In this document: positions 3,975 through 26,094 of the stretch, piece after piece
Layout: each line of letters opens with the position of its first letter
How positions within the stretch are numbered: the first letter of the stretch is position 1
Virus record (IMG/VR): IMGVR_UViG_3300028592_000004
Coordinates: 62,001 to 126,000 of that record
Reading direction: 5' to 3' (one strand)
DNA: 64,000 nucleotides
Position numbers and translations under genes: made by a program
Notes under the pieces: model-generated
What the model saw: only the letters and a program-made list of their open reading frames with translations
Told to the model about the DNA's origin: nothing
The model's database searches: none

Positions 3975-3975
3975 T

Positions 3976-3993
3976 TCAATTCCCGCGTTTTGA
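3976..3993. promoter_or_regulatory. 18-bp palindromic operator-like motif
   Basis: TCAATTCCCGCGTTTTGA (16/18), immediately before the DUF932-like gene. Confidence 0.65.
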
Positions 3994-9057: not shown

Positions 9058-12000
9058 TCACTTCGCTTTCGGACAGAACTTATCCGGAATGCCCAGAGAC
9101 CGGACCTGGTCCTGGGTGAGCTCCTCACCCCAGTGCGTCATAATCTCGGCATCAAAGCCGAAATGGTAGGGCTTGGCGATCTCAATGTCGTCTCCGTGCA
9201 GCGTCTTCGGCCACACGTCAACGCCATAGACCAAGCAGGCCGGCAGAACCTCCTCAATCAACCACGGCAACGCCTTCGGGCTCAACTCGAACATCAGGGC
9301 GTCGTGGATCTGCAGCACCAGATGGAACCACTTCTTCGGACGCGACCCGTACTTTTCCCGGTACGCCAGCAAGTTATGGATGCCGATCGAAATCGCGTCC
9401 GCCACCGTCGACTGAATCGGGAAGTTGCAAGCCTGACGCTCCTGCTCAGCCAACTTTGCGCGATCGTCTGTGATCGCGAACCGCCGGTGTCGCATGAACG
9501 GATTGCAGATCCATCCCGGCTCGCTCACGCTGAACTTGCATTCCTCCAGGTACGGATAGGTCTCGGGGTAGAGGGTGAAGTAACCGTCGATCAGGCCCTG
9601 GGCCTCCTCGACTGTCAGCTCCGTCCCTTCTTCCTTCGACTTCCGCGCAATGGCGTCCGGACCAGACTGGTACGGAACACCGAAGTTCACGGTCTTCGCC
9701 CCGGTTCGCAGGTGGAGCTTGTTGATGCTCTTCAGTCCGCTCTTGTTCGGTGGGCAGTTCAGTTTGAACGCGGCCACAGCCGTTTGGGAGTGAAGATCGA
9801 GGTAGTCCTTGTGGTCCTCTGGCAGCAAGTTCCGCGACACGTCCGAGATCATCCGCGGATCCTGCGAAAGCCATGCCATCACGCACAGCTCCGCCGACTT
9901 CAAGTCGACTTCGACCAGGATCTTTCCGGGCGACGCACAGAGCATGCTCCGAATCGGGAAGGTGTACTTCGGGCCGACGATACGGGCATAGTCGCCCTCT
10001 CGCCGTTTTGAATTCCCGCAGATTGAAATCTTCCCCTCGCGGCGAACCACCAAATACGACGTCGGCACCTCCACGCAGTACACCGGACCCGAAAACGATT
10101 CGACAGTCTTCCTGATCGTCGACGTGAGCGTTGTGTTGCTCTTCATCGCCCGAACCCGATCGCTGTCGGCGTTGACGACGGCCTGCAGATTGTTCAGCGC
10201 GAAGATCGTCTGGACCCAGACCACCTGATCCTCATCAGCGGTGGTAAAGTCCCAATGGCGTCCCTTCCGAAACCAACGCTGGATCAGCTTCGGCAGAGCT
10301 GCAAATACCTCAGCCCGAAGCTGGAACACCCAGGAGCCGAATTCCAAGCCGGTCTTCGCCGCAAGATCACAGAGCCCCGGACTGTCCTCAAACTCGAAGA
10401 TCACCTGACGGTTCTCGCGAGTGAAGCGGTGTCGGAAGCCACTGAGGAAGGACAGGGCGGTGACGAGAGGTGTGATCAGATTGGACGCACAGGGAAGCGA
10501 AATTTTTCCGTTTCCCTTGGCGTCAAACTCCCCATAGCGCAGGAACGCCAGGAGAACGGTCAGAGATTCCGGCGAAAGCTCGACAGCCTCGGCTGGATCG
10601 ACCCCCTTGTACTGACCGCTGTGGAGATGAAGAAACCGCCAGTCTGTAGGGAAGTCCTTTGCTTCCACCTCACGAACACCGCCCTCATCGGTCCGGACAA
10701 GGCACCGGTGATTCGGCGTCACCCGAAGCGAGGTCGATCGAGACTCCAGTCGAACCAGATCGCCACGGTGGCTGAACTTCAGCAGATTCGTCTTGGCGAA
10801 GGAGATCTCACCCGTCTCGGAATCGTACTGAGCCACATGGAACGGTTTGCTCTTCGGCAGGTCGCAGACACGGCGCCAGCCGTCAGGCGTCAGAAACTCC
10901 GTGAAGTCGTCATAGCAGAGGTTCTGTAGATTCGGCCGGCTGGACGACACCCGTCCCGTTTCCACGGGATAGAAGTGCGTTCGCACACGACCGTCTGAGG
11001 CCACCGCAGCGAGCAGACCACCGGGGAAGACTTCGAAGTCGTCTTCGACGATGACCTGGCCCATGTCGTCCGTCTTTGGCGGGCGGAGCACACCCTTGAG
11101 CACCTGCGACACGAATCGGACGTCACGGAGCAAGCCGACCGTACCAGAGGTGTCCTGGTACGAGAGGATCCCCAGAACTTCCTTGTCGGTGCTGGGTGCG
11201 TACTCATGGGTCTTCTTCTGCTTGACAATCTTCTCCCAAGGCTGGGGACGCTTCCCCGCGGCCTTGATCGGAGTGAACTTCAGCGATTTGACCGTGAGCG
11301 GCAGGAACCGTTTTGCACCCTGAGTGCCGTTGTACTCCTCACCAAACAGCAGCTCGCGACACTGTGGCGCCGAGTTCGCATTGAACTCGTCGTATCTCAC
11401 CTTGTTCCGAAGCTCCTGCAGTTTGATGTCCTTCGCCTCCATGAAGATCTTCGTCAGGTAGCTGCCTCGCTCGCGGTCGACGTTCAGCCCACGCATCTCC
11501 ATCTCCAGGTAACCCGGGGAGGACATCATCGTGTGCAGGAACGCCTGACGAGAGCTACGACCGTACCGATCCTTGTCGAGCATGCCGGGCTTCTTGCCGC
11601 GGCCGTTGTACGCGCTGAACAGCCGACGTGTCCCGTCAGCGTCGTACATGCCGTAGGGATGAAGAATCCAGTTCGGACACTCGCCATATCCCTCCATGTT
11701 CTTCGCGGTCAGGTTATGCTTCTTGCAGAACCACTCCTTCCACTTCTGCAGAGCGTGGTCATACCGCGGCGTACCGACGTGCCGGACACACAGCGTCTCC
11801 AGCTTGAACTCGGCCGTCTCGCAGTGCGCATGCGCTGCAGCTCCTGTGTCGAAACCGCCGGACCACTTCGTCTGCTCTCCGCGCTCTTCGTCCGTGGCAT
11901 CATCATCAATCAGGTCGACCGCGAACTCGTCGCGAATGTCGATCCCGATGCTGAGGAGCCACGGAATGTCGGCACGGAGGAAGTGGCCGATGATCCGGAC

Positions 12001-13146
12001 CTTCCGCTTCTTCGTCGATTTCAGCAGACGATTGAGGTGATAGACAGCACGCGACAGCCCAGGCCGAAACGCGGGAACGCCACCCTGACTATGCAGGACC
12101 ACACAGACCGCCGACTTCGGCTTGTGGGAGAACTGGATGGTACGCAGGTAGGCTCCGGCGTCCTGGGGTCTCTCTCCGTGCCACTCGGCGTCGATTGCGA
12201 TGTTGAGCGACTCAGGATCCGGGTCGTTGATGATCTCGTCGACGATTGCTTCCAGATGGCGCTCCTTGAAGCACACAACGTGGCGAATGTCGTCTTCGAC
12301 GCGACCAGCGTACTTGCCGTTGACCAGGCCCCAGAACTGAGCCAAACCGTCGCGATGGTTTTCGTACTGCTCCGGTTGATGGAACACCGCAGACGGATGC
12401 GTAACGACCATCACCTTGGCCGTGTGGTATTTCGGCTCTTCGCCTTCCTGGTGCAGCGGGATGTTGTAGTCGGCGGTCATGCCGAACATCGTCCCAACGG
12501 CACCCGTCTTCCCGAGGAGCAGCTTGCCGGCCTCCGAACCGAAGCACAGGATGAACTTCGGCAGGATCAGCCGCATCTCCATTTCCAGGAGAGGCCGACA
12601 GTTCTTGACCCAATCCGTGGCCAAACCATCCGACGCCGGGTCGAGCTTCATGTGGTGGCAGATGTTGGTGACGTACCAGTTCTGCCAGTCCTCCGGCGGG
12701 ATCTGCACTTCGTCCAGAGCCCGATAGAGGTCAGACGCAGCCTGCCCAACGAAGTTCCGAAACTTGTCCACCTCGTCGATGCCGGGATGCTTGCCGATCA
12801 CCATCACGTCCGCCGGCCGCGGGCCATCCGGGTTTTCTTGTCCCCAGATATGGCCCGCGACGAACGGGACGTCTTTCACTGTCCGGGTCTTCTTGACCAC
12901 GATGTCCAGACAGAACTCGGGGTCGTACAAAGCTCGCCGGTACAGGTACTCCAGCCACTTGCCGTTTTCAACGACACGCTTCTTGTCGGACTTCCCATCC
13001 ACCTTGAGGGGAGCATCCCCGAGCAACTCTGCCGCACGAACAAAGTCCGGACCAGGCAGAGGCATCCCAGGCGCCGTGAACGGCACAATGGGGAACTCCT
13101 CCTCATCCATGAAGGGGAGGTCATTCTTGTCTGCTTTGGCAATCAT
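9058..13146 (-). CDS. polA: family A DNA polymerase with N-terminal UDG-like domain, 3'-5' exonuclease and an intein (SPO1-type architecture)
   Basis: UDG-like VMVIGKHPG..E...FVG and HPSAV; Exo IDAEW and YGMYDA; GRVSSSRPNLQN; motif A VDLKSAEL, motif B RTGAKTVNFGVPY, motif C LQIHDAL. Confidence 0.92.
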   Translation of the reverse strand: MIAKADKNDLPFMDEEEFPIVPFTAPGMPLPGPDFVRAAELLGDAPLKVDGKSDKKRVVENGKWLEYLYRRALYDPEFCLDIVVKKTRTVKDVPFVAGHIWGQENPDGPRPADVMVIGKHPGIDEVDKFRNFVGQAASDLYRALDEVQIPPEDWQNWYVTNICHHMKLDPASDGLATDWVKNCRPLLEMEMRLILPKFILCFGSEAGKLLLGKTGAVGTMFGMTADYNIPLHQEGEEPKYHTAKVMVVTHPSAVFHQPEQYENHRDGLAQFWGLVNGKYAGRVEDDIRHVVCFKERHLEAIVDEIINDPDPESLNIAIDAEWHGERPQDAGAYLRTIQFSHKPKSAVCVVLHSQGGVPAFRPGLSRAVYHLNRLLKSTKKRKVRIIGHFLRADIPWLLSIGIDIRDEFAVDLIDDDATDEERGEQTKWSGGFDTGAAAHAHCETAEFKLETLCVRHVGTPRYDHALQKWKEWFCKKHNLTAKNMEGYGECPNWILHPYGMYDADGTRRLFSAYNGRGKKPGMLDKDRYGRSSRQAFLHTMMSSPGYLEMEMRGLNVDRERGSYLTKIFMEAKDIKLQELRNKVRYDEFNANSAPQCRELLFGEEYNGTQGAKRFLPLTVKSLKFTPIKAAGKRPQPWEKIVKQKKTHEYAPSTDKEVLGILSYQDTSGTVGLLRDVRFVSQVLKGVLRPPKTDDMGQVIVEDDFEVFPGGLLAAVASDGRVRTHFYPVETGRVSSSRPNLQNLCYDDFTEFLTPDGWRRVCDLPKSKPFHVAQYDSETGEISFAKTNLLKFSHRGDLVRLESRSTSLRVTPNHRCLVRTDEGGVREVEAKDFPTDWRFLHLHSGQYKGVDPAEAVELSPESLTVLLAFLRYGEFDAKGNGKISLPCASNLITPLVTALSFLSGFRHRFTRENRQVIFEFEDSPGLCDLAAKTGLEFGSWVFQLRAEVFAALPKLIQRWFRKGRHWDFTTADEDQVVWVQTIFALNNLQAVVNADSDRVRAMKSNTTLTSTIRKTVESFSGPVYCVEVPTSYLVVRREGKISICGNSKRREGDYARIVGPKYTFPIRSMLCASPGKILVEVDLKSAELCVMAWLSQDPRMISDVSRNLLPEDHKDYLDLHSQTAVAAFKLNCPPNKSGLKSINKLHLRTGAKTVNFGVPYQSGPDAIARKSKEEGTELTVEEAQGLIDGYFTLYPETYPYLEECKFSVSEPGWICNPFMRHRRFAITDDRAKLAEQERQACNFPIQSTVADAISIGIHNLLAYREKYGSRPKKWFHLVLQIHDALMFELSPKALPWLIEEVLPACLVYGVDVWPKTLHGDDIEIAKPYHFGFDAEIMTHWGEELTQDQVRSLGIPDKFCPKAK
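10012..10917 (-). mobile_element. intein (~302 aa) in DNA polymerase with probably degenerate LAGLIDADG core
   Basis: Starts CYDDFTEFLTPDGW directly after PNLQNL; ends VYCVEVPTSYLVVRREGKISICGN followed by Ser. Confidence 0.9.
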
Positions 13147-14258
13147 GCAGCGCGATACCTTTCAAGGTCGAAGCCAGCCCGACTGGCGCTCGTTTCCGCC
13201 AACTCCCAGAAGAAGTCGCGGTCGATATCGCCAGGGTCGTGGTTGTCGGGAAGGGAGACATTGCAGATGCGATCATGCACGTGAGGACGCAGCTCCCGAA
13301 GCGTCCCCTCTACGTTGTCCTGAGCATCAGGGTCCAGAGCTACGACGATCGCACACTCGCCATCGAGTTGACCAGCCCACTGCCGGATGAGCGACAGGTG
13401 CTGAGCGGACAGCTTCTTGCCGAGGAGAGCAATCCCGTGCTCGGGACTAGCGTTCCACACGCCCGGCGCCCCTTCAACGATAACGAGCAGGGGCGTCCGA
13501 GAAGCGTGGTCCCAGTTGTAGAGCATCTTGCCCTTGGGCATACCCGGCATCCCGTAGTACTTCGGAATGACGGACCAGTTCTTCTCGCCCACGAACCGTC
13601 CCTGCCAGCCGACCCGCATCCCGTTCATATAGATGGGAATGATCAGCCGGCTGTCGCACGGAGCCCAACGATCGTCAGCCTCAGTGCAGAAACCGAGCAT
13701 GAACCGTCGCGAGACGTTCCACACATCGAATCCGCGGCTGGCCATGTACTTGAAGGCTTCGTGGTCTCGATCGAGTTTGTGGAGCGGGGTCACCGCACCA
13801 GGCAGGTCGACATAGGAGAGCTTCCGGCGATCCGTATCCGGCTTCTCCCCCTCTTCAACGCGGATCTTGCTTCGCACATTGCGGTTGACGTGCGCGAAGA
13901 CCGCCTCATTGAGCAGAGTCCGATTCTTCGTCTCCAGCATGCACTCTTCGTTGTAGCACCAGGCGACCCACCAGAGTGTCCGCCGCTCCCCGTTGTCCTG
14001 CCAGGGCTCCTCCAGTCCGTACCGATGGTTCACCCACAACCGCTTGCGGGTATCGTTACAGAATGGGCAGTTGACGCGGTAGTACTCGCCACTGGAGACG
14101 ATTTCCAACCGCATCTCATTCAACACTGGATCTCGCTTCCGAACGGCGACCATCGCCTGCCGTTCGTTTGCGACGATGATCTCCCCGAACCTGCGTTTCA
14201 GCCTTCCGTAGAGGAAGGAGTTCAGGGGCTTCGCAGTCTCCATCAGATCCCACTCCAC
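13143..14258 (-). CDS. DNA primase (Zn finger + TOPRIM)
   Basis: CPFCND, WC..EEC, LIIPIY..G..VGWQGR, VIVEGAPG, VVALDPDA. Confidence 0.85.
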   Translation of the reverse strand: MEWDLMETAKPLNSFLYGRLKRRFGEIIVANERQAMVAVRKRDPVLNEMRLEIVSSGEYYRVNCPFCNDTRKRLWVNHRYGLEEPWQDNGERRTLWWVAWCYNEECMLETKNRTLLNEAVFAHVNRNVRSKIRVEEGEKPDTDRRKLSYVDLPGAVTPLHKLDRDHEAFKYMASRGFDVWNVSRRFMLGFCTEADDRWAPCDSRLIIPIYMNGMRVGWQGRFVGEKNWSVIPKYYGMPGMPKGKMLYNWDHASRTPLLVIVEGAPGVWNASPEHGIALLGKKLSAQHLSLIRQWAGQLDGECAIVVALDPDAQDNVEGTLRELRPHVHDRICNVSLPDNHDPGDIDRDFFWELAETSASRAGFDLERYRAA

Positions 14259-15982
14259 GGTGTGCTGTCGTCAGTCGAACTTTCGGTGCGGCGCCGCCGG
14301 GTTCGCCCAGCTCGCCGGTGCCGTTCGCTCGGCCCGGAGTCCTCGTCATCGTCGATCACGCCGTGGATCGACTCAAAGGAGGTCCGCGGCACAATCTGGT
14401 TCGCTTCGTGGTCCAGAACGTACGCGTTCCGAACATCAAGCACGCGAGCGAACGCCCCGTCGAGGAGCATAAGAGTCTCTTGGCCGTCCGTTCCGGCACG
14501 GCGCGCCTTCGTACACTGCACCCGAGCTACACGGGTCTGCGGGTCCTTTTGCCCGATGCAGATACAGAAGTCGCAGTTTTCGCCGAAGGCTTTCGCGCCG
14601 CCGGCATCAGTGTGGTGCATGTCCCGGGTGGGGCCACGCTTGTTAGCCTCCCCGGTGTACTGGTGCAGCAACCAGAGCGGGGAGTTGAAGCGACGAGCAA
14701 CAGCCTTGCACTGCAAGGGCAGGCGGTTGATCGCCGCGTACATGTCAGAGGTCGTGTGCTGCTTGTTGGAGGCTTCGAGATGCCGGCGGGCCAGGGTGCC
14801 TGCGTAGTCAACGATGATGATCCCTGGTTCGACGCCGAGTTGATGGATGTCGCGCTCAATGATGCCTGCGATCTCATCCACGCCGCCAAAGCCGCGGCCA
14901 TCTGCACCCATGTCCCGAATCTGACAATTCTGGTTCAGTTCAGTCATGGCCTGTTGAGCACGTTCGTACTCACCGAGCATCAGGCTTTCATCGGCGTCGT
15001 CGATTCCGGCGAGCGCCATCTGCCAGTATTCCTGCTCGTACGGCTCCAGCTCGCTGCCGGTCCGTGTCAGGGTCTCCCAATCCGTATCTGCCTCCAGCCG
15101 ATCACGAAGGATGTGAGCGGCATTGGACAGGAGCCGAACGCGATACGCGTCGAGTCCGTCCTCATATCCGAAGTAGTAGGCATGCTTCAGCGGAGCTCCC
15201 GTCTCAAGATGCTCCTGCAGAAACGCCCGCGCCGATGCCACAGCCAACGCCAAGGCAATCGTCGTCTTTCCACCACCGTACGGTCCCAGGAGTCCGAAGA
15301 CTTCGCCAGGAATCTGTCCTCCGTTCAGGAACGCGTCCAGGAACGTGAGGTAGGTTGGCAGCCCGATCAGTCGCTTGGGCGACCAGTTCTTCGGGAAGAG
15401 CTCCTTGTTACTGCCCCGTACATCCAGCGATTCCACCAGCTGAGCCGAGATCTGTGCGGTCGCCAGGAACTGGCTGAGGTTCCGCGGAGTACTCTCGTGC
15501 AGCTGATCGTCGGTCAAAACCCGCCGCAGCGGATCCATCACGGCGTGTTTGGTCATGAACCGCTTCAACAGTTGCGCACCGTAGTCGTACTGAACATCCT
15601 CAGCGGCAATCCGCTTGAAGGCGTGAAACAGCAGACCAGGCTTCTTCTTGTTGGACGAGCGAGGGTCGTCCAGCAGCTTCGCAATCAGACGGCTGTCGAT
15701 CGCCGAATCCGAGTCATTCAGCAGGGACTCCACTTCATCGCGAACTGCGAGGTAGCGGATCCCGGGCTCCCCATACTCCTCCATCAGATCGCCGAGAGCG
15801 GTCCACAGGACGGCATACTCCGGGTGACCGGCGTCGTCCCAGTGGTGCGACTCGACCGTTCCGAGTGCTTGCCGCAGAAGCGACGGCATTCGAACCAGAT
15901 GGATGATCAGGGTCTGGAGCTCGCGATCGGTGATGTTGCGAGTGAGCCGCAGTTCCCTCTTTGCGTCCTCAATTCCCGCCAT
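14243..15982 (-). CDS. dnaB: DnaB-like replicative helicase (SF4)
   Basis: GPYGGGKTT Walker A, IIVDYAG Walker B, WLLHQ, KARR arginine finger; adjacent to primase. Confidence 0.85.
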   Translation of the reverse strand: MAGIEDAKRELRLTRNITDRELQTLIIHLVRMPSLLRQALGTVESHHWDDAGHPEYAVLWTALGDLMEEYGEPGIRYLAVRDEVESLLNDSDSAIDSRLIAKLLDDPRSSNKKKPGLLFHAFKRIAAEDVQYDYGAQLLKRFMTKHAVMDPLRRVLTDDQLHESTPRNLSQFLATAQISAQLVESLDVRGSNKELFPKNWSPKRLIGLPTYLTFLDAFLNGGQIPGEVFGLLGPYGGGKTTIALALAVASARAFLQEHLETGAPLKHAYYFGYEDGLDAYRVRLLSNAAHILRDRLEADTDWETLTRTGSELEPYEQEYWQMALAGIDDADESLMLGEYERAQQAMTELNQNCQIRDMGADGRGFGGVDEIAGIIERDIHQLGVEPGIIIVDYAGTLARRHLEASNKQHTTSDMYAAINRLPLQCKAVARRFNSPLWLLHQYTGEANKRGPTRDMHHTDAGGAKAFGENCDFCICIGQKDPQTRVARVQCTKARRAGTDGQETLMLLDGAFARVLDVRNAYVLDHEANQIVPRTSFESIHGVIDDDEDSGPSERHRRAGRTRRRRTESSTDDSTPWSGI

Positions 15983-16754
15983 AGCGCTTAGCTCCTTGCT
16001 GCAAGTTGCGTCGTGCAGCGTCGCGAAGGACCTTCGGAATCAAGTCGCCCCAGATCTGGTCGTACTGATCCCGCAGTGGTGTGTATTCGAGCAGAGCCGC
16101 GTTCTGAAACTGGGCCGCGATCTTGGCGTAGTTGCCAGCGTAGGCCATGCAGTATCGGAACAGCGGAGACAGCTCAATGCGGATGTCGAGCAGGGCGCGG
16201 ATCGCAGCCTGTTCTTCATCCATGTGATGATGCAGCGTGTTGAGCGAGAACCGCTGCCGAAGCAAGCGGTCGCACATCTCCAGCTTGCGCTGAAGCTCGT
16301 CCGGCACCCGACGCATCTCGTCTTCGTAGAGACCGAGCGCCTGAGCCGACATCAGATGGTTGACCTGAGGCGGCGTCGGTGAACGCCACTTCCGGAAAAT
16401 GCACTGCATGTATGGCAGCGGCTCGATCTGCCGATCCAGGAAAAAGTCCGCCAGCCGCAACATGGGCGACGGGACGTGGACCCTTCGATCAGAGATGTAG
16501 CCACCGTAGAGTTGAAGCTCCGTCCCCTTCTGGCCGTACGTGGATTCCTTGCCCGTCCGCGCGTAGTAAAACTCCCGGACCATCGAAGCGTACAGCCTCT
16601 GGAGCTGGACCACGAACGGATGCGACGTTCCGTCATCGTATTCATCGGACGAAGAGGAGTTTTTGACGGCCCGTGAGGTTCGGCCACCGCTGCTCGTATC
16701 CCTTCTTCCGGTAGATCCTCTTCCGCGTTTCGCCGGCACGTTTGAACCCCTCAT
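15969..16754 (-). CDS. hypothetical protein (start uncertain)
   Basis: Open frame between the two helicase genes; helicase-loader role possible from position only. Confidence 0.55.
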   Translation of the reverse strand: MRGSNVPAKRGRGSTGRRDTSSGGRTSRAVKNSSSSDEYDDGTSHPFVVQLQRLYASMVREFYYARTGKESTYGQKGTELQLYGGYISDRRVHVPSPMLRLADFFLDRQIEPLPYMQCIFRKWRSPTPPQVNHLMSAQALGLYEDEMRRVPDELQRKLEMCDRLLRQRFSLNTLHHHMDEEQAAIRALLDIRIELSPLFRYCMAYAGNYAKIAAQFQNAALLEYTPLRDQYDQIWGDLIPKVLRDAARRNLQQGAKRYGGN

Positions 16755-18189
16755 CCCAGAGATCGACAAAGTCGTCCAGTTCCCCAATCTGCTTTCCACT
16801 GTCCGGGTCGAGTCGATCGACACGGCCAGGCAACTGTTCGTCGTAGATCTCGCTTCCATTTCGAGCGTCAGCTCGACTGATCCTTGCCAGCTGCTCAAAG
16901 CTCACACCCTGAGACCAGCAGTTGGTCGAGATAACCTTCTTGAGCGTCCCGCGACGGAAGTCCTTGTACATCTCCTCGCGGTCGACTTCGGTCAGCTTGA
17001 CGTAGTCCTCCGGCAGGAGGCCCATCTTGTAGAACTTCTCCTGCTTCTTCCGATCGAGCGTGGAGTACATCAAGCTGTAGTGCGGCAGCATCTCGTGCAG
17101 GTGCAGGACATGCTCCAGAGCGTCGCACATGATGAGATGTTGCGACTTGGCCGGGATGCTTCGGGCGACGTTTGCAATCGCCTGATTGCGGAACTCATTC
17201 CGCCAGATCCCGAACCGTTTGGCCTCAATGCCCATCATCCGAGACCCGTCGCTGCCAACGATCGGGTTGTACCTCGAATGGACGTTGTGCCAGTTGACGA
17301 CAATCGGCAAGACGAGGCCCATGTCGCGGGCCTCAGCGTAGCGGATCGAGAAGATCTGCCGGCCGAATATCGCTTCGATGCGGATGTCCGTGCCGTCCTT
17401 ACGGCCCTCCGGAGTGGCCGTGAAGCCGAAGCATCGAGCCGAGCCTGTAATCTGAGCAAGGGACTCCGCGTGCTTGTCAGACACCAGAGCATGCACCTCG
17501 TCCACGATCAGGATGTCGATCTCCTCCTCATCCAGATGGTGCATCGAGTCTGCGCTGCAGACTGTGACGCGTCCCCGGCTCTTCTCGGTGCCGGTGATCA
17601 TCCCGACCGATGGCAGATACTCACACAGGTGGGAGTACGTCTTTCGAACGTTCGCCAGCCCGGGAATAACGATCGCGATCTTGGCCCAGCGGTACGCCAG
17701 GCAGAACGCCGCGAAACCATAGCTCTTACCGAAACCAGCCGCAGCGACAAGCACGCCGCACTCGTTGTCGATCATCGCCGCCAGCATCTCATCCTGGCGT
17801 TCCTTGAATTCGAAGTTCGCGACACAGTGCTCCAGATCCACCTCGAACGCACGCTTCCGCGGTGAGGGTGGAGTCGAGTCCTGGTAGTCGAGTTCGAAGC
17901 CGTGCCGCTCAATCTCTTCGAAGATGCGGAAGCGGAAGCCAGCAGGACAAAGGAGCCGATCGTTCCGCCCGAAGCGGTACATGTCGACCGCCTCAGTTCG
18001 AACCGGAACGTAGTCCCCTGCCTCTGTGTAGGCCTCTTTCCCATGCAGCGTCTGCACGTAGGTGTAGACGAGCTGGCGCCGCAGCGAAGCGTTCAGATCG
18101 GCCGGCAGGACGCCGCCGTTGTACGACACGTCGAGAGCGTTTTTGCGCCGGCGGACACAAATGGTCTTTGGCAAATTTCCGGTCTCCAT
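16642..18189 (-). CDS. superfamily 2 helicase (UvsW/Rad25-like)
   Basis: AAAGFGKS, IVDEVH, FTATPEGR, STNCWSQGV, QLPGRVDR. Confidence 0.85.
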   Translation of the reverse strand: METGNLPKTICVRRRKNALDVSYNGGVLPADLNASLRRQLVYTYVQTLHGKEAYTEAGDYVPVRTEAVDMYRFGRNDRLLCPAGFRFRIFEEIERHGFELDYQDSTPPSPRKRAFEVDLEHCVANFEFKERQDEMLAAMIDNECGVLVAAAGFGKSYGFAAFCLAYRWAKIAIVIPGLANVRKTYSHLCEYLPSVGMITGTEKSRGRVTVCSADSMHHLDEEEIDILIVDEVHALVSDKHAESLAQITGSARCFGFTATPEGRKDGTDIRIEAIFGRQIFSIRYAEARDMGLVLPIVVNWHNVHSRYNPIVGSDGSRMMGIEAKRFGIWRNEFRNQAIANVARSIPAKSQHLIMCDALEHVLHLHEMLPHYSLMYSTLDRKKQEKFYKMGLLPEDYVKLTEVDREEMYKDFRRGTLKKVISTNCWSQGVSFEQLARISRADARNGSEIYDEQLPGRVDRLDPDSGKQIGELDDFVDLWDEGFKRAGETRKRIYRKKGYEQRWPNLTGRQKLLFVR

Positions 18190-18268: not shown

Positions 18269-18299
18269 AGGCCCGGCAAGTTGGTCGCTTGCCGGGCCT
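18269..18299. terminator. perfect 12-bp hairpin downstream of the RAMP gene (terminator or processing site)
   Basis: AGGCCCGGCAAG-ttggtcg-CTTGCCGGGCCT; only short T-tracts on either side. Confidence 0.6.
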
Positions 18300-18302
18300 T
18301 CT

Positions 18303-18794
18303 TTATTGCTCTGCTTGTTCTTCAGCCACTGCTGACAGGTCTATCACCTCGAAGTTTCCGAACTGGCCAGGCTTGTAGGGGCTGATCCCCCTGTACTTGC
18401 CCGCCGTGTTGAGCAGGTCTCGGAGCTGAGCATCCGAGAGTTCCCGCGGTGCCATCAGCCCTATCTCGATCACTGCATCAATCGCGAAAGCCTCGTGGAT
18501 CGCGTACCGCTTCCTCCTCCCGGGTTCGGGGGCCTCTCGCAGGTAACGCCGTAGCTCGCTGACTGGCCCAGATACGACAGGGTCCCAGGACACGTTGCGA
18601 ACGACCGCCTGCGGCAGATTCAATCCTTTGGCTGCGAACAGTGTGATGGCACGCCACCAGGTAGGTGCGAAGAGCACCCGACCCTTGGAATCCCTGGGCA
18701 TACGGAAGACCACTTGCGTACCCTGTTCGGAGCGCACGTCTCCGTAACATGGCTGCAAAAATCGCAGTCTAGCCTTCAACTCCCGCATGACCAT
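18303..18794 (-). CDS. stand-alone RAMP (Cas7/Csm3-like) RNA-binding protein
   Basis: Beta1 RLRFLQPCYG, RDSKGRVLFAPTWW (cf. RD..G.P.IPGSS), HEAF..DAVIEI, and C-terminal G-rich loop AGKYRGISPYKPGQFGNFEV. Confidence 0.65.
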   Translation of the reverse strand: MVMRELKARLRFLQPCYGDVRSEQGTQVVFRMPRDSKGRVLFAPTWWRAITLFAAKGLNLPQAVVRNVSWDPVVSGPVSELRRYLREAPEPGRRKRYAIHEAFAIDAVIEIGLMAPRELSDAQLRDLLNTAGKYRGISPYKPGQFGNFEVIDLSAVAEEQAEQ

Positions 18795-18806
18795 CCATCC
18801 GTGGAT
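18793..18806 (-). promoter_or_regulatory. CsrA-type binding hairpin at RAMP gene start
   Basis: AUCCA-CGGA-UGGAU overlapping the start at 18794; another ACGGA 9 nt upstream. Confidence 0.6.
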
Positions 18807-18878
18807 TCCGTCGAGGAGCCGATGTTAAGCGCCGGCTCGATTCTGGTCAAACACACCTTCACCAACCGTCGCAGCGGC

Positions 18879-19820
18879 CTATGAATGGTGGGTTTCCGGC
18901 TTCCAGGACTCAACATGCTGTGTGAACGCTTTACACACCAGCGGATCGTGGAAGAAGTAGTCCGGCACAAACAGCCGATCCCCCTTCCGTTCCACAACCG
19001 CGTCAGTCCACGTCCGGCACAGGAAGCTCATGAGGAGCTTGCAGACCCGCAGCTCGGCATGCGTCTTGTTCAGCCGGCACTGCCGCCAGAGGAAGTTCCG
19101 GGGATCCTCCAGCTGCGCGGCGGTCGGACCCGGCTGCCACTGCCAGGAGTTCAACACCAGCTTGGCTCGATCATTCGGCCCGTACGGTCGCTTCGCTCTC
19201 CCTAGCACCCACGCCATCGTCTGAGGGTTCATCCCCATGTACTGCATGACGCAGGACAGACTGTCAGGCTTGTCCCGCTTCACGTACCACCGGGGATCCC
19301 GGATCGCAGCCACGATACGAGCCAGAGCCGCTGTATCGTGATACCGGAAGAAGCTCCACATCTTCGCCGCCGGATGCGTCCAGAGCATGTTCCGGAGCTC
19401 ACTCTCCGGACGCTTCTGGGCGATCGCATCGGCGAGCGCGTAGGGGACATATTCGACAGCGGACATGACGTGCCACCCTCCCATCGAAGAGGGGAGGCCT
19501 TCGAGCTCACGAGCACGAAGAATAGCAATCCGCGGGTCGTCCATCTCAGCCGCGGTCAAAGACAGTCGTGGCGTGCACAGCTCAATAGGAGCCTGCGTCG
19601 CCACGAACAGTCTGGCAATCAGGACCGAGTTCGATGCAGAGGCAATCACCCGAAACCGCTTGCCACGGCTAATCGTGGGCGTCTCCATGAGAGCGTCCAC
19701 ATTCTCAGCGGCAAGGACCGGCGGGTGTTCGCCGTTCGCGCACCAAACTTGGCCCGTGGGGCACACATGCAGCTTCACGCTCGCGACGTCCGTCACTGCA
19801 CGGCTCGACTTAATCGACAT
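18879..19820 (-). CDS. IS110/Nop-domain-derived protein (Tas-like) with eroded RuvC-like N-domain
   Basis: ARIVAAIRDPRWY...CVMQYMGMNP (cf. AA.I.AEIGD..RF...L.SY.GL.P) and HAELRVCKLLMSFLCRTW (cf. HA..R..K.FL..LW); no DEDD acids and no catalytic SG. Confidence 0.55.
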   Translation of the reverse strand: MSIKSSRAVTDVASVKLHVCPTGQVWCANGEHPPVLAAENVDALMETPTISRGKRFRVIASASNSVLIARLFVATQAPIELCTPRLSLTAAEMDDPRIAILRARELEGLPSSMGGWHVMSAVEYVPYALADAIAQKRPESELRNMLWTHPAAKMWSFFRYHDTAALARIVAAIRDPRWYVKRDKPDSLSCVMQYMGMNPQTMAWVLGRAKRPYGPNDRAKLVLNSWQWQPGPTAAQLEDPRNFLWRQCRLNKTHAELRVCKLLMSFLCRTWTDAVVERKGDRLFVPDYFFHDPLVCKAFTQHVESWKPETHHS

Positions 19821-22062
19821 CAACTTTCCTTCTCCGACGACGTTCTTCTTTGATTCGTGCGACGGGGTGCAGGTCAATCATGTGGTCGAACATAGCCGAA
19901 AGACGCGGTTCGTGCGTCACGATCAAGCACTGAAGGCCTGTGGAAGCGGAAAGCTCCCTCAGACGCTCCACTGTCGGTGCCAGAGCCAGCACGTTCTCCT
20001 CGTCGAGGAACTGCGTGGGCTCATCCAGCGTCAACAGACCCAGGTCCTGGGTGAACAACGTGATGCGGGCTACACGAACCAGAATTCCGAGCAGGACTTT
20101 CTGGCCACCTGAGATTCGATCTGCAACTTGCTCCCGGCCGTCAAGGAACCGAGCAGCAAAGGTGAGTCCATCCGCTTGCCCGATCCTGAAATTCGCATCG
20201 ATCCGATGCAGAAGGTCGTTCGTGTCCTCCGCAATCATCGACAAGTAATCGGCAGCCACGATCTTCGGCAGTTCGAGCATCACCTCCCTCACGGAAGAGA
20301 TGTCCCGCTTCAACCGGATCAGGGCATTGCCGTTCTCCGCCCGAACCTTTGCAGATTCCAGGCGGGCCGTCAGAGTCTTCCGCGTCTTGTCCAGGGACGT
20401 GATCTCCCCTTCCAGACCAGATCGCTCCAGCAGTCGCTTCTTCTTTTCTTCGATCTTCTCCCGAGCTTCAGTCAGCTTCTTGGGATCGACCGCCTTTGGC
20501 TGACCGGCCAGCAACTTGTGCCTCCGGTCCTTCAAGGACTTGAGCGTCGCCTTTGCAGCGGTCACGTCCTTGTCGTGAGTCTGAACGTCCTTCTCGGCCT
20601 CCTGAATTTCGAGGAACACGTCCGAGTGATCCTCCTTCTTCTGAGCGAGAGTCTCTGTCAGCTCTTCATAGGTTGAGACCAGCTCTTCGAGCGTCTCCTT
20701 GTCGCCCTTCGGCGCGGCGGGGACGACAGTCTCTTCCAGTTGATCCTTCGTTCGATGGAAGTCCCTCTGGAGCTCCGCCAGCGCACGGTGCCGCTCAGCG
20801 AAGGCCTGATCGTGCTTACGAGATTTGGCCAGGACCTGCTCCGCAGTGCCGAGCTTGAAAACGAGTTCCTCAACACGATCGTCAGCAGAGTCTGCAATCT
20901 CATAGATTTTCGCCAGCAGCCCAGTCGGATTCCGGACCCGGACATACTGATTGACCAGATCCGAAATATACCTCGTGCTGGCGTATTCCCTGTCGAGCGT
21001 TTCTGTGTAGCTGTCGCGCTCTTCCTCAGGAACATAGTTTTTCGGGCGTTCGGGATCGCCAGCCTCTCGCAGAGTCTTGAGCTGCGCCTGCAACTCCTTG
21101 AGGCGCTTGGCAACCTTCTCTTTGGCCTCAGCAGCACGCTGGTAGGCGGAGAAGTTCTTGAGCACAGCCCGGGCGTCATCAACGTCCGCCTGCGACTCAG
21201 CGAGACCCTGCTCAGTGGCCGTGATCTCGTTATCGATGGCACGGATCTTAGTCCGAAGCTGATCCACCTCATCGGCTGCAGAGGTGTCCTCTTCCAGCTC
21301 CTGGACCTTCTTCTCCTGGGCTGCAATGTCGCGTAGCAGCTGGTCGGCATCGGCCTGAATCCGATCGTACGACTCCTGCTGCTTGATCAACGTCTGAAGC
21401 GGGTCCGCTTCGACGTCGTACCCTTCGACATCCCGATACCGCTTGAGGCTTGAGCCGGCCTTACGAGCGGACGCCTCGTTCTCCGCGAGGGAGCCCTCAA
21501 TCGTTCGGATCTCCACATCGGGATCTCCGATCTCAATTGAGGGGAGCCAGTCAGCAATCGCTTTTGCGACGAGCTCAGCCGCCTTAGTGCCGAACATCGA
21601 CTGGAAGGACTGAAGCCGAACCGCGGGCGTCTGATCGATGAAGTCGTACAGCCGACCCTGCCCGATAAAGCAGTTGTCGGAGATGAGCCGCATGTCGGCT
21701 CCGAGAATACGACCGATCTCAGCCGAGACTTCCGTCTCGCCGAACAGGGGCTTGCCGCCGTTGACCGTCATCTGGGTCTTGCACTTCTGCAAGCCCCGGA
21801 CAATCTCCAGGCGGTCGCCGGCGTGGGTCATGTTCAGAACACCGTAGGACTTCGCACCCTCGGGCGCGAGCGTACAGATGTTCGACTCCTTGACACCGGC
21901 GTTGGTGGTGAAGTCGCCAGTGATCAGCCACTGGACGATCTTCAGGATGCTGCTCTTCCCTGAGCCGTTTGGGCCGACGATTCCATTGATCCCCGGCTTG
22001 AAGTCCACCGACAGCTTGCGGTGGTAGCAGACTTCGAAAGCATCCAGGTGCTCAAGATTCAT
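19810..22062 (-). CDS. sbcC: SbcC/Rad50-like SMC ATPase
   Basis: GPNGSGKSS, long coiled coil, ISGGQK, LDEPTQFLD, IVTHE. Confidence 0.9.
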   Translation of the reverse strand: MNLEHLDAFEVCYHRKLSVDFKPGINGIVGPNGSGKSSILKIVQWLITGDFTTNAGVKESNICTLAPEGAKSYGVLNMTHAGDRLEIVRGLQKCKTQMTVNGGKPLFGETEVSAEIGRILGADMRLISDNCFIGQGRLYDFIDQTPAVRLQSFQSMFGTKAAELVAKAIADWLPSIEIGDPDVEIRTIEGSLAENEASARKAGSSLKRYRDVEGYDVEADPLQTLIKQQESYDRIQADADQLLRDIAAQEKKVQELEEDTSAADEVDQLRTKIRAIDNEITATEQGLAESQADVDDARAVLKNFSAYQRAAEAKEKVAKRLKELQAQLKTLREAGDPERPKNYVPEEERDSYTETLDREYASTRYISDLVNQYVRVRNPTGLLAKIYEIADSADDRVEELVFKLGTAEQVLAKSRKHDQAFAERHRALAELQRDFHRTKDQLEETVVPAAPKGDKETLEELVSTYEELTETLAQKKEDHSDVFLEIQEAEKDVQTHDKDVTAAKATLKSLKDRRHKLLAGQPKAVDPKKLTEAREKIEEKKKRLLERSGLEGEITSLDKTRKTLTARLESAKVRAENGNALIRLKRDISSVREVMLELPKIVAADYLSMIAEDTNDLLHRIDANFRIGQADGLTFAARFLDGREQVADRISGGQKVLLGILVRVARITLFTQDLGLLTLDEPTQFLDEENVLALAPTVERLRELSASTGLQCLIVTHEPRLSAMFDHMIDLHPVARIKEERRRRRKVDVD

Positions 22063-23206
22063 CGTCTTCCTCTTCCTCCTCATCGACCGTAGTGATCACC
22101 TCGGTCTGGATTTTCTTCAGCTCATCGAGCACGGCGTTCTTGCTTTCTGCAATCTCCAGCAAGCGCCGGCACAGCCTGTACTCATCGGATCCCTTCGGCG
22201 TCGCTCGCTCAAGGAACGAGAGCAGACTGGTGCGTTGACCGACGCGGTCCTTCGTCTTCTCGATCCGAACGACCTTTGAACCTGTCGGCCGCGGAGAGAG
22301 GAACACGTGGGCCTGATTGTCGAACGCCGTCATCAGGCGGTCGTACACGTCAGGCAGGTTATCGGGATAGTCCACGTGGATGATCGGCGTACGGACCACC
22401 TCCGGAATATCGTCGTCGTAGAAGTTGCCCTCCTTCGCGTCCTCGCACAGATCGTCCAGTCCACCGATGTCATCGAGGCTGAAGGTGTGGAAGGGGCGAG
22501 TGATGAGCTTCACCGACTTGTAGTCGACGAGCTTGTTCCTGTTGAACTCCAGCTCCCAGAAGGCCTTTTCGGGCGGCTCGTCGATCGACTGCATGCACGT
22601 CGATCCTGGAGAGAAGACACGCAACGTCGAGCCGTCCTCGCGCTTCAGCTTCACCGTCTTGTGCTGATGGAGATCCCCAGTCAGAACGACCGGAGCAGGG
22701 CAGTCTTCGAGTTGACCTTCGACGCCGGGCAGGGTGCCCATGAAGTCAGGTCCACCCCAAACCTGGTGACAGACGAACAGACCGATCTGGAGGTCAGCAG
22801 CCTCTTCAAGCTCGGTGAGAAGCTGGTGAGACGCCTGCCAGTCCAGGCCGTACATCTTCAGGCCACCGATAGTGACGAGCCTGCGATGAAAGTGACGCGG
22901 CCAGGGATGAGCATCGAACCGGGCGCGAACCGCGTTCCGCTCGTGCTGACCCTGAATGAAGTAGAACGGAATCCCAGCTTCCTGCAGCCTGTCGAACTGC
23001 TCGTGAGCCTGGACCTGAATGCTGGGAGTCGGATCCACCGTATCGATCAGGTCACCGGCGCCGATGACGGCGTCGACCTTCTCTTCAACGGCCCGATCCA
23101 CGATTTGCTTCAGAGAGAAAACTGCATCGCCAGCCAGATCCGGGTGACGACGCCAGGCACGCTCCTGAAGGTGCCAGTCTGAGGTGGACAGGAGACGAAT
23201 CGACAC
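22052..23206 (-). CDS. sbcD: SbcD/Mre11-like metallophosphoesterase nuclease
   Basis: SDWHL, GAGDLID, QGQHE, TGDLHQH; coupled to sbcC. Confidence 0.9.
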   Translation of the reverse strand: MSIRLLSTSDWHLQERAWRRHPDLAGDAVFSLKQIVDRAVEEKVDAVIGAGDLIDTVDPTPSIQVQAHEQFDRLQEAGIPFYFIQGQHERNAVRARFDAHPWPRHFHRRLVTIGGLKMYGLDWQASHQLLTELEEAADLQIGLFVCHQVWGGPDFMGTLPGVEGQLEDCPAPVVLTGDLHQHKTVKLKREDGSTLRVFSPGSTCMQSIDEPPEKAFWELEFNRNKLVDYKSVKLITRPFHTFSLDDIGGLDDLCEDAKEGNFYDDDIPEVVRTPIIHVDYPDNLPDVYDRLMTAFDNQAHVFLSPRPTGSKVVRIEKTKDRVGQRTSLLSFLERATPKGSDEYRLCRRLLEIAESKNAVLDELKKIQTEVITTVDEEEEEDDES

Positions 23207-23481: not shown

Positions 23482-24238
23482 CGGAACAACCGCGAATGGA
23501 GTGATAGATCTTGAAGTTCGGATGGAGGATCATCGGCGCGGGGGACCAACGCTGATGCTCCTTCGGATGATTCGCATAGACCGGAGCCTCGGGGTTCTCC
23601 ATCGATCCAGCGAACTGCGTCTGAAATCCAAGGGCCTGGCAAAGCCAGGAGATGTAGACATCAGGCCAGAGATCCCACGTCTCGTACTTCTCCGGCGCCA
23701 GGAAGCGTCGCTCAACAAGGCGGTCTACGAACTTCCGCGACATCCAGTGAGATGCGAAGAAGATCGTTTCTGCGGTCGGAGCAAAGTCCGCGGGCAGCTC
23801 GGTACAGAGGTCGCGAACGAACGCACCTCGGGACGGCCACCACATCTGATAGTTGACGCGATCCCGGACCCCGAGCAGATCGACATCGCACTTCTCCATC
23901 TCCAGGCGAGCCCAGATATCAAGATGCAGACCGATGGGCAGAGCATCATCGTCGAGGACGAGAACGCGATCGAAGGTGATGCCCTGATCGATCGCCCACT
24001 GGATGCCCTGGTAGGTGATGAAGCCAGACAGGTTCAGCTTCGGCATCAGCTTGTTGGGAATGACAGCGTACTCACGCGGGCCGGGCTCCGGCCCGAATGG
24101 CGAGTCGATGGCGCCGCCGCCGTCGACGATCACCATCAGGAATGACTCGCTGTGAGACCACTCGATCGCCTCGAACTGGTCTGTGGCGATGAACTGGCCC
24201 CGGTTCGTCGCCATCACGACCAAGGTTTTGACGTGCAT
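23399..24238 (-). CDS. GT-A fold glycosyltransferase-like protein
   Basis: LMVIVDGG, RVLVLDDDALP, WPDVYISW; TAATG coupling to upstream gene. Confidence 0.6.
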   Translation of the reverse strand: MHVKTLVVMATNRGQFIATDQFEAIEWSHSESFLMVIVDGGGAIDSPFGPEPGPREYAVIPNKLMPKLNLSGFITYQGIQWAIDQGITFDRVLVLDDDALPIGLHLDIWARLEMEKCDVDLLGVRDRVNYQMWWPSRGAFVRDLCTELPADFAPTAETIFFASHWMSRKFVDRLVERRFLAPEKYETWDLWPDVYISWLCQALGFQTQFAGSMENPEAPVYANHPKEHQRWSPAPMILHPNFKIYHSIRGCSGVDEVTIREHYQAVRHSQVSDGLHDCC

Positions 24239-25296
24239 TATCGGCTTTCGATCAGCCGGACCCACTGTTGAAGGTAAAGGCCCAGCTTAGGAACGTAGTT
24301 GCGGGTGTCTTCGTAGACAGAGTCGGCGGGTACGTCCTTGACCGCCACGGGATTCATGAGGAACTCACCGAGCTCCATCGCGCACGAAGAGAACGTGTTC
24401 GACGTCAGCTTCGCGTTGTCGATGATATCGACCAGGAACTCGTTGGCCAGGACACCCGGCGCCTCGCGGACCAGGTTGATCATGGGCTTGCTGGCGCGGG
24501 AGTGGTGGATGACCGGGTTACCCACGGCAATCGACCATCCAAGCTGGCGACAGATCCGTTGCAGAATCCAGCCGCCCCAGATGTCGTCGAATCGGAAGAA
24601 GGGCGTCCCGTTCCCCATCTTGGGGAAGTACGAGGCCGGCGCCGCTTCGGTGTTGATGGCAAAGTTCATCCCGCAGAGCGGAGTGAGCTGCCGCGGATTG
24701 AGCAGCTGGGTCATGACACGCGGGCAGCGATAGCCACCCGGCGTCTCCATACCGGACCGTTCTTTCGTCGGAGCCAGGGAGTGGATGGCGTCAAAGTCCG
24801 GGATCCCATCCCACAGGCCCACACTGGCTGCGACCTGATTCAAGTCTTTCTGCCGCTCATAAGGCAGGCCACGAACATGCAGGTGGCCAAGCGGAGACGA
24901 GAAGCGGGGGAAACCGCTGAGCTGGGCCAGGTGAGCCCGCGCCACGAAATCCGGATTCCGTTCGTCGACCGGGAAACAGTCGTCGTCCAGAATCAGGACC
25001 CGCTTCTCGTTGCTCCGCACAGCCTTCAGCAGGGCTGCCATTTTGATGCCGGGATCGCCGATCGAGATACACTCGGCGTCCGGTCCCCAGCTCTGAATCT
25101 CGTCGACCGTGATGATCTCGCAGTCGATGAAGGAGTAACGTTCGACCAACTCCCTCGCCTTGGGCAGCGTGGCGGTGTCCGCGTACACCAGATAGAAGGT
25201 GCCGAAAGGCCAACTTCGTTCTGAGCTGTCGCACCACTTCTCCAGAAACCACTCCAGATGCTTGATGCGGTTCGAGGCCATCGCCAGAGCAATCAT
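24238..25296 (-). CDS. reversibly glycosylated polypeptide / UDP-arabinopyranose mutase-like protein (GT75)
   Basis: ILDDDCFP, VRGLPY, VGLWDGIPDFDA, PLCGMNFA, RFDDIWGGW, HHSRAS, NLVREAPG follow the RGP/UAM motif series. Confidence 0.8.
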   Translation of the reverse strand: MIALAMASNRIKHLEWFLEKWCDSSERSWPFGTFYLVYADTATLPKARELVERYSFIDCEIITVDEIQSWGPDAECISIGDPGIKMAALLKAVRSNEKRVLILDDDCFPVDERNPDFVARAHLAQLSGFPRFSSPLGHLHVRGLPYERQKDLNQVAASVGLWDGIPDFDAIHSLAPTKERSGMETPGGYRCPRVMTQLLNPRQLTPLCGMNFAINTEAAPASYFPKMGNGTPFFRFDDIWGGWILQRICRQLGWSIAVGNPVIHHSRASKPMINLVREAPGVLANEFLVDIIDNAKLTSNTFSSCAMELGEFLMNPVAVKDVPADSVYEDTRNYVPKLGLYLQQWVRLIESR

Positions 25297-25305
25297 TGCT
25301 TCGCC

Positions 25306-26094
25306 TTACAGTACATCCCGTACTGACTGTGGGATCGGTTCGAGGGGCTGCATTGCCCCGATGTTGTCCACGTTTGTCCGGAACCACTTCTCGAACTCTT
25401 CGTCCGAACAGCGGTTCTGGAAGCCGGCACCTGCGGCAATGTCTGCCTTGCTCCACTTCCGATTCCGGAAGCGTTCCAGGCGACGACGGGCGACAGCATA
25501 ATCCAGCTTGTGCAGGTGGACAAGAAGGAGGTTCGGGTCGACCGAAATCGTCTTGTGCGGGACGAGGATCGACTCGTGGAAACCCTTGCACCACATCATC
25601 GGTACACGGCTCAAAAGCGGCTTGCTGTACTGCGTGGTCGGATACCACCAACCGCGGTGTTCCAGCATCCGACTCTGGATCAGAGCCTGATCCTCTTCAC
25701 CGATCTGATGCACAACCTCAAAGCCAGTGCATCGCACGACAGGCTGAACCATGTCGGCCGCGTACTCGACCAGATTCGTGTAGTGCGAGGCCGGATCAGT
25801 CAGGACGAACTCGTCGACCTCGACGAAGAGGACCGCCTCATAGCTGTTCAGCAGGAAGTGCTGGAAGTCCTGAACCGTCTTCAGCATCCAGTCGTGATCG
25901 ACCTCGTCGTTGAAGACCGACACGACACGGATATCGCGTGCAACCGCATCCTCCAGCGCCAGGTTGTCGTCCGAGTGGTTGTCCAGAATGAACAGGTCCG
26001 AACCATACCCATGATTGATGTAGTGGTCGCACCAGACCGGCAGAAACTCCGGCTCATCCTTGACGATCGTGAAGATGGCTAGGGGTTTTCGCAT
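25306..26094 (-). CDS. GT2-like glycosyltransferase (Glyco_tranf_2_4 type)
   Basis: IVKDEPEFLPVWCDHY, ILDNHSDD, VLFVEVDEF, LLLVHL. Confidence 0.75.
   Translation of the reverse strand: MRKPLAIFTIVKDEPEFLPVWCDHYINHGYGSDLFILDNHSDDNLALEDAVARDIRVVSVFNDEVDHDWMLKTVQDFQHFLLNSYEAVLFVEVDEFVLTDPASHYTNLVEYAADMVQPVVRCTGFEVVHQIGEEDQALIQSRMLEHRGWWYPTTQYSKPLLSRVPMMWCKGFHESILVPHKTISVDPNLLLVHLHKLDYAVARRRLERFRNRKWSKADIAAGAGFQNRCSDEEFEKWFRTNVDNIGAMQPLEPIPQSVRDVL

Follow-up and report, generated by a model that had tools for sequence, protein, structure and literature searches.

A TasR-like protein, predicted to be nuclease-dead, is encoded directly behind a Rad50/Mre11-like pair in the replisome module of large uncultured phages

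What does a protein with the predicted fold of an RNA-guided effector do when it has lost its catalytic residues, has no recognizable guide array in its genome and is encoded directly behind a Rad50-like gene? This question is raised by the gene at positions 18879 to 19820 of a 64,000-nucleotide stretch of DNA, hereafter the window, which comprises bases 62001-126000 of the 229,210-bp IMG/VR virus record IMGVR_UViG_3300028592_000004, a genome rated 100% complete by CheckV. With moderate confidence, we read the product of this gene, the TasR-like protein, as a compact, catalytically dead TasR-type protein that would act as a non-enzymatic nucleic-acid-binding subunit in the phage replication-recombination module.

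The predicted structure places the protein among the Tas and IS110 proteins. An AlphaFold2 model built from the family alignment reached a predicted local distance difference test score (pLDDT) of 93.5 and a predicted template modeling score (pTM) of 0.91. Using Foldseek against the Protein Data Bank (PDB), we obtained TIGR-TasR (9mty) as the top match at a probability of 0.99, followed by ISCro4 and IS621. AlphaFold DB clusters annotated as IS110 matched the model at a probability of 1.0, and an ESM Atlas cluster of candidate-phyla-radiation (CPR) bacteria carrying PF02371 aligned with a template modeling (TM) score of 0.68 over 270 residues, while the viral structure library BFVD gave no meaningful match. 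As modeled, the protein is of the IS110/Nop-type fold and its closest solved relative is TIGR-TasR. The gene and its predicted parts are:

18879..19820, minus strand: TasR-like coding sequence (P0001), 313 aa, ATG start, stop codon included
19470..19784, minus strand: RuvC/RNase H-like domain without catalytic acids, residues ~13-117
19377..19469, minus strand: short two-helix linker, residues ~118-148, from predicted secondary structure
18909..19376, minus strand: Nop/Transposase_20-like C-terminal domain, residues ~149-304
19224..19298, minus strand: helix-hairpin-helix (HhH)-like motif DPRWY...Y(L/M)G(L/M).P, residues 175-199, the most conserved stretch of the family

In the structure search, residues ~13-117 resembled RuvC/YqgF folds and the N-terminal domain of TasR. 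The linker that follows consists of helices of 14 and 8 residues only in the AlphaFold2 model and starts with a near-invariant SLGGWH. The coiled coil of TaTasR spans K109-H168, about 60 residues, according to Xu et al. (2026, bioRxiv 10.64898/2026.09.09.750476). The linker at residues 118-148 would correspond to the site of this ~60-residue coiled-coil dimerization hairpin in TasR and Nop5. Within the HhH-like motif of the C-terminal domain D175, P176, R177 and G196 are invariant or nearly so across the family.

Sequence profiles were far less informative than the model. The protein has no match in Pfam (E<=1), PHROGs, NCBIfam or PADLOC, and among 128 of its homologues (family alignment A1) scanned individually against Pfam, a single one reaches PF02371, at E 0.028. 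A six-frame search of the genome with PF02371 was negative, control genomes being positive, and the family profile gave chance matches only against PDB sequences. Comparison by hhalign of the family with a 35-sequence TasH alignment, built from the Salicola phage protein (SpTasH), yielded a weak P=0.012 over 65 columns, in which the HhH-like motif meets the PGVG...YvGl of TasH. Against SpTasH alone the equivalent motif was aligned without significance. Because Pfam is empty at E<=1 and hhalign goes no further than this, the relationship to Tas and IS110 proteins rests on structure. An initial annotation of the locus had recognized an IS110/Nop-type C-terminal half behind a RuvC-like N-terminal half, and had named profile searches as well as structure prediction with Foldseek as ways to check it. 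The structural check supports that description, with TasR (9mty) ranking first and IS110 proteins among the matches; the profile searches against IS110, Nop and Tas families do not.

The residues expected of an active nuclease or recombinase are missing from most of the family. At the end of strand 4 (G60), where IS110 and TasR carry Glu, 91% of the family has Gly and the window protein Ala, and an acid at any of positions 59-62 occurs in only 3 of the 128 members. The end of strand 1 (position 20) is Asp in 44% of the family and Cys in the window protein. Positions 20, 92 and 95 are jointly acidic in 13 members. No conserved Ser was found within 18 residues after Y.GL.P in the alignment; an SG dipeptide occurs there in 21 members at unaligned positions and does not occur in the window protein. 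The loss of the DEDD acids and of the SG after GL.P, which the initial annotation had described for the window protein, extends across the 128-member alignment. Judged from these residues, the TasR-like protein is predicted to be nuclease-dead, with both the DEDD acids and the IS110 serine lost. Eleven basic positions are conserved in the family, eight in the C-terminal and three in the N-terminal domain, and because of these and the HhH-like motif, nucleic-acid binding by the protein appears plausible.

When all 1.84 billion cluster representatives were scanned with HMMER, 683 homologues were returned at E<=1e-3, 469 of them at E<=1e-10; all are of ~300 aa and ~30% identical across their full length. 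Since 683 homologues share a uniform length, the open reading frame (ORF) is not a chance one. Family motifs in the 128-member alignment are SLGGWH, HPAW, DPRWYVD..PDR..RL..YLGL.P, FLWR, LRASQ.F and LF.PE.FF. A word-indexed protein search found only the protein itself, tblastn found no match to it in 50,697 GenBank phage records, and the gene is single-copy in the whole genome. Its ATG is preceded by the Shine-Dalgarno-like GGAGAAGGA and lies before the TAA stop of the upstream 757-aa SbcC-like gene, so that the two genes overlap by 11 nt. This ATG, which the initial annotation had also chosen and whose ORF contains all peptides quoted there, is likely the start codon; an in-frame TTG at 19877 would give an alternative ORF of 332 aa (18879..19877).

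The context that tells most about function, absent from the initial annotation, is the Rad50/Mre11-like pair, the replisome genes and a Cas7-like neighbor. To describe it we compared 31 viral loci from IMG/VR, retrieved through the TasR-like family and ranging in GC content from 0.37 to 0.65, and 6 long metagenomic loci fetched through individual homologues, 37 other loci in all. The TasR-like gene directly follows an SbcC/Rad50-like gene in 31/31 viral and 6/6 long loci, and in most loci an SbcD/Mre11-like gene lies upstream of SbcC. A superfamily 2 (SF2) helicase follows downstream in all 31 viral loci. In four of the six long loci the SbcC stop and the TasR-like start overlap, as they do in the window, or lie next to each other. 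The six also share the window's order of genes, namely Mre11/SbcD-like, Rad50/SbcC-like, TasR-like, sometimes a small gene, SF2 helicase, a protein without explanation, DnaB-like helicase, DnaG-type primase and a uracil-DNA-glycosylase (UDG)-exonuclease-PolA fusion. In the window this module comprises, besides the TasR-like gene and the small gene behind it:

22052..23206, minus strand: SbcD/Mre11-like phosphoesterase (Pfam Metallophos, PHROG 100), first gene of the same-direction block
19810..22083, minus strand: SbcC/Rad50-like ATPase (Pfam SMC_N and AAA_23, PHROG 77)
16642..18189, minus strand: SF2 (ResIII/DEAD-type) helicase (Pfam ResIII, PHROG 16)
9058..15982, minus strand: remainder of the replisome block, in the same gene order in all long loci, made up of the following three
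14243-15982, minus strand: DnaB-like helicase
13143-14258, minus strand: DnaG-type primase
9058-13146, minus strand: UDG-exonuclease-PolA fusion

Because its placement is invariant in all loci, the TasR-like gene is not mobile and belongs to the core replication and recombination genes. Large uncultured phages of a broad lineage share it as a core gene of their replication-recombination module. This lineage has no cultured relatives; the best-ranked GenBank phage match of the polymerase fusion is 24% identical, and the SF2 helicase has no match at 1e-10 in the same tblastn collection. The fusion itself, a product of 1362 aa, joins a uracil-DNA-glycosylase-superfamily domain to a 3'-5' exonuclease and a family A DNA polymerase and is present in all related loci. 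For the 204-aa protein encoded between the helicase and DnaB we found no explanation.

This fixed position also bears on the possibility that the gene is an insertion sequence (IS) residing in the phage, that is, an active IS110-family transposase or bridge recombinase. The window protein shares the RuvC-like plus Tnp two-domain fold of the bridge recombinases IS621 and ISCro4 and resembles them in size. It differs from them in lacking the DEDD tetrad, a conserved catalytic serine and any match to Pfam DEDD_Tnp_IS110 (PF01548) or Transposase_20 (PF02371). Moreover, the gene has neither a bridge RNA nor IS ends, for which there is no room, and it is single-copy and occupies the same syntenic position in all relatives. 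The missing catalytic residues, the missing Pfam match, the single copy and the fixed synteny together refute an active IS110 element, to which we assign virtually no probability. That the protein is not a transposase had been proposed in the initial annotation on the ground that no IS ends were visible; the single copy and its position directly after SbcC in 37/37 other loci bear this out.

The likeness to TIGR-TasR, a Nop-type C-terminal fold with an N-terminal RuvC domain that is apparently inactive in the window protein, turns attention to guide RNA. According to Faure et al. (2025, PMC12045711), Tas proteins are defined by a Nop domain together with a TIGR array. We consider it very unlikely that the window encodes an ordinary TIGR-Tas system with a missed array, i.e., a divergent dual-repeat or stem-loop array elsewhere in the genome or within coding sequence. 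Such arrays can be flexible in position and can occur even inside tas genes, and because TIGR boxes vary between clades, a motif-free period scan was added to the motif search. Double units of the form CCA-N8-12-TG (box C-spacer-box D-loop-box C-spacer-box D) number 78 and 39 per strand in the whole genome versus ~62 in shuffles, which is the level of chance. The same holds for double units with flanking stems (27 and 13 matches versus 18-20 expected) and for double units in five related loci (L006-L010). As a positive control, the period scan recovered the SpTIGR array directly 3' of the TasH gene of Salicola phage CGphi29 (period 36, match fraction 0.62). Applied to the whole window genome it nevertheless detected only acidic and collagen-like repeats inside ORFs and no non-coding array, and in 13 further related loci it found no periodic array; a single unit with divergent boxes would slip through these scans.

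Other searches agree with the scans. Tandem Repeats Finder (TRF) found no non-coding array and Rfam no family within the window, enrichment of intergenic 9-mers revealed nothing array-like, and blastn of 66 intergenic gaps from 15 loci returned no common non-coding element. Little space would be left for a missed array in a complete genome that is ~92% coding by a crude call and whose largest gap is 564 bp. The initial annotation had reported no CCA-N9-TG array beside the gene, and the full-genome scan likewise found no non-coding array. The sequence that adjoins the TasR-like gene on its 3' side is:

18795..18878, minus strand: 84-nt spacer between the TasR-like and Cas7-like genes, no guide-like structure

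The spacer folds no better than its shuffles (z +0.89), as do the spacers adjoining the TasR-like gene in L006 and L009. It contains a sigma-70-like sequence, TTGACC-17-TAACAT at 18850-18822, which is a consensus match only. A 383-nt gap before the TasR-like gene in L006 (9619-10000) was considered as an RNA and rejected, as it holds the ORF remnant of an HNH/Endo VII-like homing endonuclease (CxxC ... DHNH-like).

Several repeats were recorded in the course of these scans. In L006, positions 3837-4063, ~6 kb upstream of the TasR-like gene, hold 7-8 intergenic copies of a 27-bp palindromic unit, and in L009, positions 3755-3853, again intergenic and ~6 kb upstream, hold 2.8 copies of a 35-bp unit beside an AT-rich stretch. 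We rejected both as guide arrays; their units are near-identical and iteron-like or palindromic, have no variable spacers and differ between the two loci, and they resemble origin iterons or operators. Within the window, repeats with periods of 9/27/36/72 lie inside long ORFs at 56295-56539 (plus strand) and 63001-63860 (minus strand); they look like collagen-like Gly-X-Y coding repeats and are the genome's only period-36 signals. Long low-complexity TCC/TCG-type repeats at 28205-28617 and 40286-40454, also inside ORFs, encode Asp/Glu-rich acidic tracts on the minus strand. The 9-mer TGCTGACAG occurs nine times in the genome, six of them in intergenic gaps, and may be a phage promoter or regulatory element.

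Immediately downstream of the TasR-like gene lies a second gene whose predicted structure recalls a guide-RNA-binding protein:

18303..18794, minus strand: Cas7/Csm3-like RAMP protein, 163 aa, assigned from structure only
18269..18299, no strand: 13-bp GC-rich hairpin directly 3' of the Cas7-like stop

The AlphaFold2 model of the 163-aa protein has a pLDDT of 83.9. Foldseek against the PDB gave 119 matches at E<=1e-3, and among the matches listed all are type III/VII RAMPs, mostly Cas7/Csm3. RAMP clusters of AlphaFold DB match the model at a probability of 1.0 and an Atlas PF03787 cluster at a TM score of 0.68. On this model, the product is a minimal Cas7/Csm3-like RAMP with the RAMP/RRM core fold of type III/VII Cas7. 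Invariant motifs among 13 distinct sequences are HEAF, G.Y.GISP and YGTF.V. The protein has no match in Pfam, NCBIfam or PADLOC, the genome holds no CRISPR array, and the neighboring genes are replication genes; it is unusual for a phage replisome module to contain a Cas7-like gene on its own.

The Cas7-like gene is less constant than its neighbors. It lies between the TasR-like gene and the helicase in 15/31 viral loci, in addition to the window, and fills the same slot in 13/13 loci retrieved through the Cas7-like protein itself. In the rest of the 31 viral loci (L025-L055) this place is either empty or taken by small genes unrelated to it; L043 has a ClpS-like protein there and L028 three paralogous ~115-aa proteins. 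The interval between the TasR-like and helicase genes is a variable point of insertion. Hairpins similar to that at 18269-18299 and likewise terminator-like stand 3' of the Cas7-like gene in L012, L015, L017/L018 and L022; such a hairpin is present wherever the gene is succeeded by an intergenic gap. Because a terminator-like hairpin follows the Cas7-like gene, the SbcD, SbcC, TasR-like and Cas7-like genes look like one transcription unit, of which the hairpin is the probable end.

Members of the Cas7-like family were found on viral contigs only, and no relative was found in 185,579 prokaryotic species genomes. This distribution would suit an anti-defense decoy, in which inert Cas7-like and Tas-like copies of host guide-RNA-binding subunits poison the CRISPR or TIGR complexes of the host or titrate away these complexes or their RNAs, and so would the character of the two proteins, both stripped-down, defense-type RNA-binding subunits that are apparently catalytically reduced. 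Anti-defense genes, however, usually lie in variable regions, whereas the TasR-like gene is fixed in the replisome module in every locus and is translationally linked to SbcC across hosts of GC 0.37-0.65. We regard the decoy as very unlikely.

Set against TIGR-TasR as a whole, the window system differs in several respects. Its genome has no TIGR array or tigRNA-like unit, the protein has no long coiled-coil dimerization hairpin, and its family has no significant sequence-profile similarity to TasH. Furthermore, the family is fixed after a Rad50-like gene in a replisome module and has a Cas7-like neighbor in half of the loci. Neither the Rad50/Mre11-replisome context nor the Cas7-like partner was found in the available excerpts of Faure et al. 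and Xu et al. or in literature searches, which returned no paper pairing Tas proteins with Cas7-like proteins. Xu et al. do describe one long branch of compact TasR, without coiled coil and without array, in densely packed viral genomes, and the TasR-like protein matches the description of this branch. They give the source of guides for that branch as an open question, an "alternative guide RNA source" being possible.

Such a source would be needed if the window encodes an arrayless RNA-guided or RNA-dependent system, in which the TasR-like protein, together with the Cas7-like RAMP where present, uses a non-array RNA to bring a nuclease or helicase to specific DNA. Candidate RNAs would be a transcript fragment, a primer, the RNA of an R-loop or a single scattered stem-loop guide. 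We hold this to be possible but doubtful. According to Faure et al. (PMC12045711), every characterized protein with such a C-terminal domain binds guide-type RNA, and the window as well as 15/31 loci place two unrelated guide-RNA-binding folds, Tas-type and Cas7-type, next to each other. The protein also keeps an inactive RuvC domain, as do dead TasR proteins, which like TasA are RNA-guided repressors according to Xu et al., and the alternative source named there would apply here as well. On the other hand, no candidate RNA was found: units of box C/D and spacer occur at chance frequency with or without stems, the adjoining spacer is unstructured and no non-coding sequence is conserved between loci. 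The Cas7-like gene is absent from about half of the loci, where its slot is empty or holds unrelated genes, and the protein lacks the coiled coil through which Tas dimers read two spacers. Phage DNA is present in several soil metagenome runs, and a search of sequencing runs returned no RNA sequencing run that contains this phage. A more specific form, an RNA-aimed phage Mre11/Rad50 machine in which a non-array RNA would choose the DNA sites at which the SbcCD-like nuclease and UvsW-like helicase act, strikes us as unlikely.

We return to the non-enzymatic subunit as the reading that we favor. The TasR-like protein would be made together with SbcC and SbcD and would recognize a DNA structure or an RNA-DNA hybrid, such as ends, hairpins, branches or R-loops. 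It could then set the position or the activity of the Mre11/Rad50-like nuclease and of the helicase in recombination-dependent replication, and would neither move DNA like IS110 nor act as an array-guided effector. The closest analogy for this working mode may be a scaffold of the Nop5 type. Nop5 and Nop56/58 combine a dead RuvC-like N-terminal domain with a Nop domain and serve as non-catalytic scaffolds that position an enzyme on nucleic acid (PMC12045711). The window protein differs from them in lacking a coiled coil; its neighbors are SbcC, the Cas7-like protein and a helicase, with no fibrillarin- or L7Ae-like partner nearby, and its setting is one of DNA replication and repair where theirs is RNA modification. 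The 50 best structural matches of the protein do not include Nop5.

A second comparison is offered by the third partners of Mre11-Rad50, Nbs1/Xrs2 and archaeal NurA-HerA, where an extra protein is likewise encoded, and probably made, with the pair; here a helicase comes next. NurA, too, has the fold of RNase H, and its gene stands with that of the HerA helicase next to Mre11-Rad50. Unlike the window protein, NurA is an active nuclease, and the likeness is one of gene arrangement alone, with no homology claimed.

Several points weigh against the subunit reading. Homology to Tas or IS110 is without significance at the sequence-profile level, and the window copy lacks three of the eight conserved basic residues of the C-terminal domain (S187, C190, C268). 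The proposed partnership with SbcC and SbcD is deduced from gene arrangement, and synteny within one phage lineage is partly inherited and is no proof of joint function. Finally, an RNA-free role would be a departure because all characterized relatives (IS110, Tas, Nop5/56/58, Prp31) work through bound RNA.

Two further features of the genome were noted. Just upstream of the SbcD-like gene, at window positions 24238-27515 on the minus strand, lie genes for a PfkB kinase/cytidylyltransferase fusion (HldE-like), a family 2 glycosyltransferase and a "reversibly glycosylated polypeptide" family protein. The kinase/cytidylyltransferase fusion recurs in L007 and L010, and the genes could make up a pathway to a sugar nucleotide that might serve to modify DNA or a surface. 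Outside the window, at 195999-197470 and 227545-227619 of the genome, are seven clustered tRNA genes (Gln, Glu, Ser, Leu, Tyr, Trp, Phe) plus a tRNA with anticodon TCA (selenocysteine, SeC, per ARAGORN).

TIGR-Tas systems and IS110 bridge recombinases are recently described RNA-guided systems, and this locus gives a concrete context that fits the arrayless TasR branch. The proteins are small (313 and 163 aa) and can be expressed together with SbcCD, which makes the system experimentally tractable. If the TasR-like protein works without RNA, it would clearly exemplify how a scaffold that binds guide RNA became an accessory factor of DNA repair. If it depends on RNA, the Mre11/Rad50 system of this locus would be directed by RNA, and the guides would come from a source of a new kind. 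Should the RNA-aimed form hold, the arrayless TasR branch would be explained, and an RNA-guided module would be tied to the firing of replication origins or to recombination-dependent replication, not to defense or transposition.

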